A stretch of 64,000 nt of DNA, taken from the NCBI GenBank assembly GCA_002104945.1, contig MCFH01000085.1, forward strand, positions 62,001 through 126,000, given 5' to 3'. The first letter of the stretch is position 1; the number at the start of each line of letters is the position of its first letter. Both the position numbers and the translations under genes were made by a program. Source of the DNA: Piromyces finnis finn. Its lineage: Eukaryota; Fungi; Neocallimastigomycota. Shown piece after piece: positions 7,120 through 15,761 of the stretch. Below the pieces are notes generated by a model. The model did not search any database and had not been told where the DNA came from. It was given only the letters and a program-made list of their open reading frames with translations.

Positions 7120-10100
7120 TTAGTCTTTCATATCAATTGAGCAACATATTTTTAAACGACGCTTCTTTTTACTATATTCTGTATATTCTGGATGTGAGGT
7201 ACTAAAGGCTACCCAATTAATAAATTTTAATATATAGAATAAGGTAATACATCCATTAATAATAAAAATGCCTGTTAGAGTCATCGAACTAGAAACTCTC
7301 ATTAATTTTTTATTTAAATCTTTAGAATAGTGAGGATTAACTTTTAAATTTGTTTCAGGAGTTGTACTAAGTCGGTAGAAAGAAAAAATTAATATCCCAC
7401 TGAAGTAATATGTGAGCATTGTTAGTAGAAGAGAAAGAGATTTGAAAAATTGAAAATTTATACAAAGATATTCAATTGTAATGAAGGCATAAGCTCCTAC
7501 AGCTACAAAGAATAAAATCCAATGGGAATGGGGTAGAGTGTAAGTTTCACTCTCCAAATAGATGAGATCATCGAATATTAACATAGAAAATTTACTTTTG
7601 TACCCTATGAGAAGACCAGAAAAAAGAAATAGTAGACCAATACCATAAATAATAATTGGAATGGATTTAAATAGTTTTTCATAATAAATCCGTGGCTTAG
7701 TTTTCTTTATTTGTTTCTTTTTCATTTTTTTATTCATAAAATTAACATTAATTAGATCATTCACTTGATGTTTAAATTGATTAATGAAACGAGCATTTTT
7801 TTGATTTTCCTTTACTTTGTTAATTTCTTTTTTTTTTGCTTTTATATTTATAGTATGATAATCATAATAATTGTCAGTGTCAAAATCAATATGATATTGT
7901 TGTTTTCTGTAATAGTCGTCATTATTTTCATCTTCATCTTCATTTTCATATTCTTCATCATTATTTTGATCATCACTTTCTTCATCCTCTTCTAAATTAA
8001 TAATATTGATTCGTTTATTTTTATTACGATAGGAAGAAGAGGAAGAAGGGGAATTCAATAAGGTAAAAATTGATAGCTTATAACTCATTACTTTTTTACA
8101 TCGATACTTTATTCGTCGAAGACAACTAATAATAACATCTAATTCAATACCGATTTTTTTGAGTAAAAGATTTGTGATAATAATATTGAGTAAAGTACTC
8201 AACATCATACTAATGACCATCATTACAAGACTAAGTTTATTTTGGGTAATATATATATGGTGAACTAGAAGAAAAGAAAGGTTTATATTGGAACCAGCTG
8301 TTATTATAGTTAATAAAATACTGATAATACTGATAATGCCATACCAGGTTAACTCAAAGGTTAAATACAGAACCAAAAAGATAATAGAAAGAAGACTGGT
8401 ATATGAATAGAGAGAAAAGGTCAGTAGATGATTTTTTATTACTAGTTCATTATCATTCTGGAAACCGTCATAATTATACACAAACATTATGTAAGCAAAT
8501 GATAATAATGTAACAGAAATGGTCACTACTGGGTAAACATATAGATTATTTCGTATAGTACTGAAAGGTTCATAACCCCCATCAATATTAAGATGATGAA
8601 TACCATAGCTTTGGCTAAGATGTTTCACACTAAACCGAGAGGATCGAAATATTTTCCAATAGAGAAGTAATAAACTACCAAAAAATATGATAATATTTCC
8701 AAAGATGATAGTGAAAGGGAGAGATTTACAATTGGATTGAGAACACTTAAGCAAAGAAATGTAGACATCAATACATACAGAACCTGATTGTAATGGAAGA
8801 CACCATAACACTATTTCAGAAAGATATTTAAGTACAGCCCAATGTACTAAATATTCCAGTATTACTAGTATAATCTTAAAGAAGACACCGATCAATAAAA
8901 TATAGATAGAAAATTTTATGGAAGAAGTGAGTTTATTAGAATTAGCCGCCAAATAAATACTTAGCATAATAAATCCAGAAGAGAATAGTACCGTACTTAT
9001 AATTAGATAGAAGCTTTTTAAATAATGTTCCAGCTTTATTCTTTTCCATACAAAAGAGAGCATCTGAAAAGAAACCGTAGCCATAATAAAAATACAGCAT
9101 CCAATTAACATTAAATAAAATGAATAGGAAGTGGAATTAAATTGGTCAACATTATGCCGATTAGCCCAAATCCATTTAATGACATTATAGGCAGAAAAGT
9201 TAGCGCCGATTGAAATCATAGAAAGAATACAAAATACAGTTTTGTTATGTTTAATAGAATAATACCAATAGGTCAAAAGAACAATATCTAAGAAGCCAAA
9301 CGATAAGAAAATTATATGAGCTGTAAAATCCACATTAAAATATTTAAATAGTCCAATAAAACAAGTGAAAAAGAGGAAGTAACTACTAATGATGAATGTT
9401 ATTAAAAAGTTTCCAAAAAAACATAATACTTTCGATCCTTTGAAAAGGGTCAAAAGATCAACAGAGGTTAGCGGTTGATTTTTAATGATTCCACCAGACG
9501 TATTCATAAACATAGCAGTATTGTTAATAGGAAAAAGTTTAATACGAGAAGTAGTTTTAATAATCGATGCCTTGTATGAAGAACCTTTCCAACATCGGAA
9601 GATTTCTGACACAAAAATTGGAATGCAATAAATCAAAACTCCAATATATTTCAAGAGATGATTTACCGAGTTTGCAATTTCGGAGAAGCTGCTAAGAATG
9701 AAAAATCCACAACATATTAAGCTAACAGAAATAAAGAGACTACTAAAGAGGTTCAAAGAAACTATTTGAATAACCACATATTCAAACCAGCATATTAATG
9801 AAAGAAGGCCAAAAATCATAAGTAGTACACCTGGAATTAATTCACTTGAAAGCAATTTTTGATATTGACGACAAATTCCTACCGTGAAAAGTACCAATCC
9901 TACTAAAGAAAGCAACTTGATCATAAAAAGGAGACTTTTCTGAAGACTATTAGTGAAATGATGAAGATAAAGATGTGAAATAGAATGAACCGAAACTAAG
10001 CAAAATAAGAAGATAAAGGAAAAGAGAAAGAGAAACACAAATGCTTTATTCAGAGATTTTAAGTGAATCATACACCAAAAAGTAATATAACCAGATGTTA

Positions 10101-13100: not shown

Positions 13101-15761
13101 TTAATATTATACTGATGGATATCATCCTCGTCCATTAATTCTCGAGAAGAAGGTTGATAAAGGTATGGGTTAGAAATCGTAGAGGTATATCCATACTTTA
13201 AAGTAGAAGGAGATTGATATTGTGAAGAGCGATTATTTTCTATTCCATCATCATAAAAAGAATTAAGTATATTGGTATTTTGATAGCAATAATTAGTGAA
13301 AAATTCAAACTGTTTCATTTGATTGACATTAGATACTGTTTTTTTATATTGTAAAGGCTTAGAAGATTGATAGAAGGGTTGAGAGAAGTGATTATTTGAT
13401 TTATATTGATCTGATTCTGTATTAGGGTGAGATAATAAATCTCTTAGATGAAAATCCTCCATAGGGTAAAGTTTATATCCAAGAATCCCTCTAACGTAAG
13501 TAGAAAGAAGGATAACAATTGTATTAGTAACGGTAGAAAATTCTGAATACACTAAATGATAAATTTGTGGAATACAATAAAGAGGAATAGCCAAGCCAGA
13601 GGTGATAACAGATCCAAAAAATATTCTAATATATACATTACTGTGTGTGGTAGTATCATAGATATCAAAGATACCCCAAACTAAATGAAGAAAAGTAATG
13701 ATAGAGATGAGTGTGGTTAATGAATAGGGTAATCCAATAGAAATGGATGTCGATAATAATAGAATGGTCACAGGAATGATCACCACTATACTTAATAAGG
13801 ATCCTATCAAATATTCTTGGAAGGTAAATTTAGTCCAATTACTTTTTAACTGTTGATATTGAATTTTATTGAGATAATTCTGTACTAAGATTGTTTCTTG
13901 TTGATAATTGGGATTCATAACTTGAATAGTAGTTGTATCATGATTATTAGGTTTTAGAATAAAAAAGTAACCCAAGAAAAGAAGTCCCTGTATATAATAA
14001 AAGAATTCAATAAAAGAGAAATGTGTTCCAGATCTTTTGTAAATTGGGCAATATCGATTGAAAAGAAATAAGAAAAATAGGTAGGTAAAGAATATATTGA
14101 TAGATGAAAACAATATAACTACAATTCTTAACTTTATATATATATATTGATTCCAGTAATAAAAAAAAAAGGAAAATGAAATGTATTATGTATATTTGAA
14201 TATGTTATTGTATTGGAATTTATATAGTTGAAATTTGTTGAAGAATAAATTTATTATATTCCATATTCCAGTATATGAATAAATTATTAATATATATTAT
14301 TATATAGTTATTTATTATATGAATATATGAATAATATCAAATTTGAAGTAAAAAAAAAAAAAAAAGCATCATGTTAATCTATTATTATTATTATTATTAT
14401 TATTATTATTATTATTATTATTATTATTATTATTATTATTATTATTATTATTATTATTATTATTATTATTATTATTATTATTATTATTATTATTATTATT
14501 ATTATTATTATTATTATTATTATTATTATTATTATTATTATTATTATTATTATTATTATTTATTATCTATTTGCTTATTTCATTTTAATATACCTTTAAA
14601 ATATTAGCATCCCATTCTTTATGACAATCCACTATAAAAGTTTTACATCGTTCTTTCCTTCCATCCCATTTCATAGCAATAAATCCCATTACAATAGAAG
14701 TTATTAACCAAATAAATATCATTATAAGAAAAGCTACTTTCACCCAAAATATCATAAAAATGAAATTTGAATTATTGTGATCATACACAATACAAATTGT
14801 TAATACCTCCAGAAAAAAAATTGAAAATAAAAAAGTTATGAAATATTTATAAAATCGTATAAATGGTATTTCATTTAAGTTTGGTTTGCAAAGTCTATAC
14901 AAAAAAATATTATAAAAAAAAGTTAATGAATTTATTATTAATGTTGTTGTTATTGTTATCGTTATTTTACATACTTTAAATACTGAAAATAAATGGTTTG
15001 AGAAGTAATCATAGTAAAAAAAGTTGTTAAAAAAGAAAATAATAATACATAATTGGTAGAAATATTTAATAAATTAAAAATAAATCCAAGAATAAAACCT
15101 ATCATAAATAGTAATAAAAAAAAAAAAAAAAAGAAGAAAAAAAAAAAATTCAATATATTTATCTTTTTATTATTCATTCATTTGTTGTTGCTTTTCTTAA
15201 AATAAATTCATTTGAATTCCTTATCTAATTTATAAAATATAATATTTTTTTTCATATTTACATGTCGAAATTAATATTACTAGTGAACTTATTATTAAAT
15301 AGTGATGTTGATAACTAGAGATATTAATGGCTTTTCTTTTAAATTTTTAATTAAAAATCATATAAATCATGATTTCAAATATAAAAAAGAAATATTATAT
15401 ATTTATAATTAATACAATTAATACTCTATCAAATTTTGATAATAGCTCTTTTAGCATGTATATATATATATATTTAAAAAAAATAAAAGTTTTTACTATT
15501 TACTTTTTGTTTTTAATAGCTTTTAGAAAACTCCATAGAGAGAGTAATAAGAGAAATAGGTAAATGAGTGTATGTCCTATTGAATAACCTATCTATTTAA
15601 TTTAAATTTTTTTATTTTATAAAACATCAATAAGATAACACCAACAAAAAAAAATAGATAAATATCACTTAACTTACCTGTGAAATATATTCTACCCAAA
15701 TATAGTTGTCCTTTTCTATTCGATACAAAGAACATCGACTAGCTTGAAATGTATCTTCCAT
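7120..15761 (-). CDS. Giant polytopic membrane protein, ~2443 aa, ~47 predicted TM: 7TM module + 4TM unit + 3TM/GDPD-like ectodomain/1TM + eight 4TM repeats; function unknown
   Basis: Hand-spliced exons: 15761-15678, 15592-15504, 15335-15262, 15098-14975, 14894-14594, 14131-12668, 12455-12345, 12204-7120. They total 7332 nt (2444 codons including stop). All seven introns are GT..AG with matching phases and there are no in-frame stops. The model joins track ORFs 14962..15177, 14585..14902, 12647..14113 and 7120..12093. Confidence 0.8.
14381..14560. repeat. (TAT)n microsatellite in intron 5 of the giant membrane-protein gene
   Basis: Perfect trimer array; explains the poly-Tyr ORF 14371..14607. 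Confidence 0.97.

Follow-up and report, generated by a model that had tools for sequence, protein, structure and literature searches.

Does the minus strand between positions 15761 and 7120 of this stretch of the Piromyces finnis genome (64,000 nucleotides of contig MCFH01000085.1, hereafter the window) carry one giant gene or several adjacent ones, and what could its product do? A first-pass annotation, made from the letters alone, had read there a single spliced gene in which a seven-helix membrane module, a GDPD-like ectodomain and nine four-helix repeats were fused into a chain of 2443 residues with about 47 transmembrane helices. We find that the gene is real, spliced and expressed, and its product belongs to an undescribed family that has been found only in zoosporic fungi (Neocallimastigomycota and Chytridiomycota). 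The gene and the architecture of its product are solid. The complete reading, namely that a single eight-exon gene encodes a 2443-residue polytopic membrane protein of this family working as a surface sensor or scaffold, is offered tentatively, as we give it somewhat less than an even chance. What is undescribed is the family and its architecture; no new mechanism has been demonstrated.

Eight minus-strand exons join in frame into 7332 nucleotides with a single terminal stop, and thus give the same 2443 residues that had been proposed, so that the earlier annotation must have joined these eight exons too. All introns are of the GT..AG type. The exons are as follows (slashes mark splice points, and helices and sides of the membrane are predicted):

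15678-15761, minus strand: exon 1, residues 1-28, with the start codon (ATG at 15761) and the extracellular N-terminus; donor CAG/GTAAGT.
15504-15592, minus strand: exon 2, residues 29-58, ending in phase 2, with helix 1; acceptor AATAG/ATA, donor AA/GTAAAT.
15262-15335, minus strand: exon 3, 74 nucleotides, entered in phase 2 and left in phase 1, with helix 2.
14975-15098, minus strand: exon 4, 124 nucleotides, with helix 3.
14594-14894, minus strand: exon 5, 301 nucleotides, with helices 4-5.
12668-14131, minus strand: exon 6, residues 225-712, with helices 6-14, a cytosolic loop of 159 residues and the start of the ectodomain.
12345-12455, minus strand: exon 7, 111 nucleotides, residues 713-749, part of the ectodomain.
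7120-12204, minus strand: exon 8, residues 750-2443 and the stop codon, an open frame of 1694 residues with the remainder of the ectodomain, helices 15-47 and the tail.

The 3′ part of this structure has been observed directly in RNA, which came from three runs of the same organism (X1, X2 and X3) whose contigs were aligned over 9000-14375. A contig of 2298 nucleotides from run X1 aligns to 11782-12204, 12345-12455 and 12668-14136, and 140 and 212 letters are missing at its two joints, each stretch bounded by CT..AC, that is, GT..AG on the coding strand. Exon 6 is uninterrupted in this contig (12668-14136), which carries 295 letters beyond 14136. Because these letters, together with five ambiguous ones (TAAAG), match the length of the 301-nucleotide exon 5 (14894-14594), the acceptor of exon 6 is placed at 14131, where it reads AAAG/TTAAGA with the same ambiguity of five letters. 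A second contig, of 4839 nucleotides, spans 11755-9000 and extends 2083 letters further, which would take it beyond the stop codon if it is collinear with the genome, and the 26-letter A-rich gap between both contigs (11755-11782) is spanned by contigs from runs X2 and X3. Splicing at the three 3′-most introns is thus shown by RNA. The particulars on which the first-pass annotation had built its gene were also recovered: the open reading frame of 1657 residues (7120-12093) is open for 37 codons upstream as far as an AG acceptor at 12204, the upstream frame ends at a CAA/GTAAGT donor whose last exon base is 12668, and the open 111-nucleotide bridging exon (12455-12345) has both of its joints in RNA. 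The two junctions that it had singled out as critical, 12668/12455 and 12345/12204, are exact in a contig that continues into the upstream exon, and the contig excludes the alternative of separate transcripts, with polyadenylation near 12600 and a new start near 12200.

Toward the 5′ end, evidence from RNA becomes less specific and conservation carries the structure. The share of sampled genomic words found in RNA is 0.62 over 11900-15800, a stretch that is about 0.63 exonic. Over 14960-15800 it is 0.22-0.25 (two runs), which fits the exons without the introns, although the identity of single exons is not resolvable by this measure. The X1 contig starts one base inside the edge of exon 5 (14894), just short of the joint that would span the intron 14974-14895. 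Such an assembly break may reflect more than one upstream junction, for instance an isoform that skips exons 3-4. In the corresponding locus of Piromyces sp. E2 (L001), the five 5′ exons occur in the same order, upstream of the annotated and truncated start. Protein identity between both species is 88% in exon 1 (L001 8480-8554), 63% in exon 2, 58% in exon 4 (L001 9322-9513) and 47% in exon 5. Exon 2 has equal length and phase, and the donor phase of exon 4 and the acceptor of exon 6 are conserved. Little of the sequence of exon 3 is conserved, yet in both species this exon is entered and left in the same phases, its lengths of 74 and 83 nucleotides agree modulo 3, and a T/GTAA donor is kept. 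Conservation at this end reaches even the chytrids. In BLASTP, residues 13-116 of the Spizellomyces punctatus protein SPPG_01040 (P0010, 2548 residues) match residues 1-99 of the P. finnis protein, a range from exon 1 to the first part of exon 4, and intron 1 lies at the identical codon boundary in both genes (YISE/gtacgt...cag/IGY in Spizellomyces, YISQ/gtaagt...tag/IGY in P. finnis).

The public gene models depart from this structure at several places. GenBank lists the gene as the hypothetical protein BCR36DRAFT_416725 (P0001), one fused model of 2211 residues, to which the open frame of exon 8 is 100% identical. This model includes exon 2 and lacks exons 3 and 4, and where exon 5 ends and exon 6 starts, it has a single long intron instead, which is contradicted by the RNA contig. 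It also excises residues 1989-2074 (about 8487-8230) as an intron, a stretch that is conserved in frame in five orthologues. The coding stretches that it calls intron are 8230-8487, 13987-14131 and 14594-14693. The start of exon 6, cut from the GenBank models, is conserved in the metagenomic open reading frames P0007 and P0014. In Piromyces sp. E2, the model PIROE2DRAFT_64779 has a truncated N-terminus, and a conserved segment of the ectodomain (YNNEN...SKPV) has been cut out of it. Both species' models can be corrected with the present coordinates. The region is very AT-rich, with a GC content of about 25-32% in exons and of 6-19% in introns. A perfect ATT/AAT microsatellite of about 180 nucleotides (14380-14560) lies within intron 5 (14593-14132); in open frames, it reads as poly-Asn or poly-Ile.

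Could two or three adjacent genes (one for an N-terminal membrane protein, one for an ectodomain protein and one for a repeat protein) have been joined by mistake? Callers of open reading frames in metagenomes do give exons 6 and 8 as separate proteins (P0007, P0002, P0004), and some chytrid gene models begin inside the ectodomain (P0011, P0013). However, spliced RNA links exons 5, 6, 7 and 8, and the ectodomain itself is spread over three exons. In Spizellomyces, moreover, residues 705-2548 are encoded by one exon, which is preceded by a frame for helices 2-14 and the first part of the ectodomain. Chytrid models that are short either break off at contig ends or, as in Gaertneriomyces, have the N-terminal module encoded directly upstream of the truncated model. 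Together with synteny (see below), these layouts refute the possibility that orthologues are encoded as two or three separate genes. We consider an artefact of this kind largely refuted already and highly improbable.

How widespread is such a gene? Orthologues are found in Piromyces sp. E2, Anaeromyces robustus, Orpinomyces and rumen metagenomes, with 63-77% BLASTP identity to the query. An exhaustive HMMER search with residues 667-1866 against 1.84 billion representatives gave eight proteins, and the named full-length matches are from Spizellomyces, Gaertneriomyces, Borealophlyctis, Blyttiomyces and Anaeromyces, all of them Chytridiomycota or Neocallimastigomycota. A word-based search with the Spizellomyces protein added a single further sequence. 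The order of blocks in SPPG_01040 is also the same, with seven helices first, then blocks of three (probably four) and of three and, beyond a gap of some 250 residues, about 30 more. Pfam holds no family for any exon piece or for six homologues; likewise, none was matched by 7123-12204 at E up to 1 or by four chytrid homologues at E up to 0.1. Signatures of Piezo, of channels or of enzymes were likewise not found in the protein, and the receptor-sensor-channel unit suggested in the first-pass annotation is a conjecture. In the literature, no paper on the family was found, and queries with the Spizellomyces locus tag and for a chytrid Piezo-like protein gave no relevant result. The earlier claim that no described protein has this architecture therefore stands for the literature and for Pfam, and has to be qualified for the databases, as GenBank already holds the partly wrong fused model, and chytrids have full-length homologues.

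A greedy hydropathy scan finds 47 helices in the protein, as had been estimated, arranged as 7+4+3, a helix-free stretch of 328 residues (677-1004), 1+28, a charged loop and 4. Lysine and arginine in short loops number 67 on the side assigned to the inside and 33 on that assigned to the outside. This bias fits an arrangement in which the N-terminus and the ectodomain would be outside, and the charged loops and the C-terminal tail inside. In addition, the ectodomain has 10 N-glycosylation sequons versus 4.2 expected from its composition, while two Asn-rich loops assigned to the cytosol are depleted in them (2 versus 4.1 expected, and 0 versus 1.7 expected). Because of the Lys/Arg bias and the clustering of sequons, the ectodomain is placed outside, and the topology originally drawn for it, for the long loops and for the tail is retained. 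From the ectodomain to the C-terminus, the following parts can be distinguished:

11440-12775, minus strand: ectodomain, residues 677-1004, with two introns inside and no hydrophobic helix.
8137-11298, minus strand: seven homologous four-helix units, U1-U7, as defined by hhalign self-comparison.
U1, residues 1052-1182.
U2, residues 1186-1352.
U3, residues 1372-1499.
U4, residues 1501-1636.
U5, residues 1672-1802.
U6, residues 1806-1938.
U7, residues 1962-2105.
7663-8136, minus strand: charged loop, predicted to be cytosolic, about residues 2106-2263 (170 residues in the hydropathy scan), acidic and then basic, with 35 K/R, 28 D/E and no sequons.
7123-7662, minus strand: C-terminal four helices (residues 2264-2408), defined by hydropathy, and basic tail, which ends in K-I-C-C-S-I-D.

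What is the relation between the four-helix blocks? The hhalign self-comparison was near blank with the close orthologues alone, and the repeats became clear after five chytrid sequences had been added. Off-diagonal alignments include one of 682 columns (score 171, E 6e-19), one of 702 columns (score 160) and one of 449 columns (score 100). With a reversed profile as the control, scores in the helix-rich part were at most 36, with one higher score (57) in a low-complexity acidic stretch, and the comparison of the N-terminal module with the repeats scored 25. When single units were compared, pairs of them aligned over their full length and in register, with E-values of 7.5e-12 (U1-U2), 1.8e-7 (U2-U4), 3.1e-7 (U3-U5), 1.2e-6 (U1-U4), 1.3e-6 (U2-U3), 3.1e-5 (U5-U7) and 1e-3 (U2-U6). 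The units share a motif, GW..F.IG.GR, at the end of their first helix. Consequently, judging by these profiles, the seven predicted units are demonstrably homologous. The first-pass annotation had counted nine such repeats, which has to be reduced to seven, since neither the C-terminal four helices nor the blocks upstream (the 3+1 helices flanking the ectodomain and the N-terminal blocks) gave anything better than 0.01 against U1-U7 in hhalign.

A row of homologous four-helix units in so large a protein brings to mind a mechanosensitive channel of the Piezo type, of independent origin or diverged beyond recognition, whose units would make up a curved blade and so gate a pore that the last helices form. 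In line with this idea, the seven tandem units are accompanied by up to three further four-helix blocks, and both the size (2443-2548 residues) and the helix count are within or above the range of Piezo. By contrast, the Piezo families of Pfam were not detected in any of the pieces with E-values of up to 1 allowed, and a PDB profile search with the repeat region gave noise only. The AlphaFold model of residues 1000-2199 shows separate four-helix bundles with a mean predicted local distance difference test score (pLDDT) of 50 (55-84 over U1-U3 and U5). Neither Foldseek (PDB and AFDB clusters) nor the Atlas shape search gave a meaningful match for the whole repeat model, and mouse PIEZO1 (7wlt_A) ranked 19th in Foldseek, with an E-value of 0.35 and a template-modelling score of 0.08, for this query of mean pLDDT 50. 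In addition, what follows U7 is the charged loop and four helices with short loops, with no cap domain of about 240 residues between the last two helices, and from Neocallimastigomycota to chytrids there is no conservation of this C-terminal block. We therefore regard a Piezo-type channel as improbable. A related possibility, for which we see a similarly small chance, is that the seven units, possibly with the three further blocks, form an independently evolved, Piezo-like, membrane-bending blade of zoosporic fungi. If true, the protein would be a tension or curvature sensor of a new class.

The ectodomain poses a different problem, as it had been labelled GDPD-like. Its NPxLV...RG motif is conserved as far as the chytrids, and the ectodomains of Piromyces and Spizellomyces are 18% identical. 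Language-model look-ups with both of them returned neighbours that all belong to the clan of GDPD, SMase D, PI-PLC and Menorin, with scores of 0.49 and 0.84-0.89 that the tool itself grades as leads only. These results, together with the resemblance of the C-terminal part of the ectodomain to the last beta-alpha units of GDPD, are what could be expected from a lipid-handling machine in which an RTA1-like seven-helix lipid translocator would be fused with a phosphodiesterase of the GDPD/PLC type, active at the cell surface in cleaving head groups of glycerophospholipids or glycosylphosphatidylinositol. The N-terminal module, which lies near RTA1 and DUF3112 in language-model space, would also suit such a machine. 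However, Pfam GDPD (PF03009) was not matched by any of five ectodomain sequences in hmmscan at E up to 10, and a PDB profile search with the ectodomain alignment gave noise only. A comparison in hhalign with a UgpQ-family profile, built from homologues of the E. coli protein, gave an E-value of 0.48, a weak negative, as this profile is thin (121 sequences with 83-98% identity). The AlphaFold model of the ectodomain, built from 10 sequences, has a pLDDT of 41 and is unusable. Furthermore, the chytrid ectodomains, of about 180-220 residues, are short for a full barrel. In an alignment of 10 ectodomains, one Arg is invariant, with N, P, F and W near-invariant, and the catalytic set of His-Arg...Glu...Asp...His has no conserved His, Asp or Glu counterpart. 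As the only invariant column is this Arg, the ectodomain is probably not an enzyme, and if it is a PLC-type barrel, it would be a non-catalytic one. Consequently, the GDPD label is not confirmed, and the language-model results and the resemblance of motifs are leads only. A derivation from the GDPD/PLC-like clan has roughly even odds, and an active lipid-cleaving machine is unlikely.

The N-terminal block, for which seven helices had been predicted, does show, in Piromyces as in Spizellomyces, seven hydropathy peaks ahead of its first long loop, with a K/R bias that fits an N-terminus outside. Residues 1-330 of the Spizellomyces protein are placed by the language model (score 0.92, 182-184 shared features) next to ascomycete seven-helix clusters of 325-341 residues. 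The next neighbours are DUF7702, DUF3112 and RTA1, and the nearest models have seven-helix folds like those of G-protein-coupled receptors. Pfam gave noise only (WBP-1, MARVEL) for the same residues at E up to 10. A resemblance of the module to fungal proteins of the RTA1/DUF3112 type is thus a lead only. At the opposite end, the tail with two adjacent cysteines (KICCSID), to which attention had already been drawn, is conserved in six of six Neocallimastigomycota sequences and is absent from the chytrids.

How might such a protein work? In the reading that we prefer, it would not be an enzyme. The seven-helix module and the non-catalytic ectodomain would form an outward-facing head at the cell surface that senses a ligand or a lipid, and the 28 helices of U1-U7 would be laid out as a long row of four-helix bundles with a very large footprint in the membrane. 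This row may read or organise the state of the bilayer, and the output may pass through the cytosolic loops and a probably acylated Cys-Cys tail, the latter in Neocallimastigomycota, where it is conserved. Taken alone, the mechanism of a non-enzymatic surface sensor or scaffold is possible, though doubtful, and several points weigh against the reading as a whole. Its functional part is our best guess. The four 5′-most introns (15677-15593, 15503-15336, 15261-15099 and 14974-14895) are supported by conservation and not by direct RNA joints. Joining exon 2 to exon 5, as in the GenBank model, also keeps the frame, and an isoform without exons 3-4, which would lose two helices, is possible. With pLDDT values of 41 and 50, the AlphaFold models are too weak to fix the arrangement of the bundles. 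Single units superpose on sarcospan, a calcium-channel gamma subunit, LCI1, MS4A and claudin with Z of 10-13.5, and values of 10-13 are within the reach of generic helical bundles. Finally, the assignment of the seven-helix module is a lead that has neither an alignment nor an E-value behind it.

The neighbours of the gene are shared with its relatives. The synteny referred to above involves the following genes:

18209-19465, minus strand: S-adenosylmethionine decarboxylase gene, the upstream neighbour on the same strand, also present in Piromyces sp. E2 (L001 2723-4720).
1551 to about 6000, plus strand: PAN3-like gene, the downstream neighbour, converging on the 3′ end of the giant gene, with a CCCH zinc finger (1551-1793) and a C-terminal piece (5735-5959); PAN3 is at the same place in Anaeromyces (L002 5680-10239).

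In Spizellomyces punctatus, the strand opposite to the homologue carries a gene of the OSCA/TMEM63 type (RSN1_7TM, PHM7_cyt; L004 1-943) some 2 kb upstream, a vicinity that is probably a coincidence.

Why should such a gene receive attention? Its conservation extends from rumen fungi as far as free-living chytrids, yet it matches neither a Pfam family nor a solved structure. Its product is a candidate surface-sensing protein of zoosporic fungi, a group with few characterised sensing proteins. One species with a homologue, Spizellomyces punctatus, is open to transformation, which makes the question testable.

Among known proteins, Piezo comes close in plan. It has nine four-helix units and 38 helices, a number commonly given as the largest for a single chain. 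The giant protein would exceed it with about 47 helices, built on a related plan of four-helix units so far known mainly from Piezo. Because of this count and of the core of seven units, it is a good target for structure determination. Both proteins are very large, similar in total length and made mostly of tandem four-helix membrane units. They differ in that the giant protein has no match to Piezo in sequence or Pfam, nor in fold with its model of mean pLDDT 50, has seven homologous units and not nine, and carries a seven-helix head and an ectodomain before the repeats, with no cap or pore module after them.

The N-terminal 330 residues of the Spizellomyces homologue adjoin the clusters of RTA1, DUF3112 and DUF7702 in language-model space, although the members of these families are stand-alone proteins of about 300-450 residues and their Pfam models gave no match with E-values of up to 10 allowed. 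With the TIM barrels of the GDPD/PLC-like kind, including the membrane-bound GDE2/3/6, the giant protein shares an extracellular domain between membrane helices, and two distant members of its family gave leads to this clan; its domain, however, is short, has no match to hidden Markov models or profiles and lacks conserved catalytic residues. Lastly, single model units superpose on tetraspan proteins (sarcospan, claudin/PMP22, MS4A/CD20 and synaptophysin) with a root-mean-square deviation of 2.6-4 Å over about 130 residues. This likeness is that of a generic up-and-down bundle with no relation in sequence, and the giant protein fuses seven such units in its single chain.

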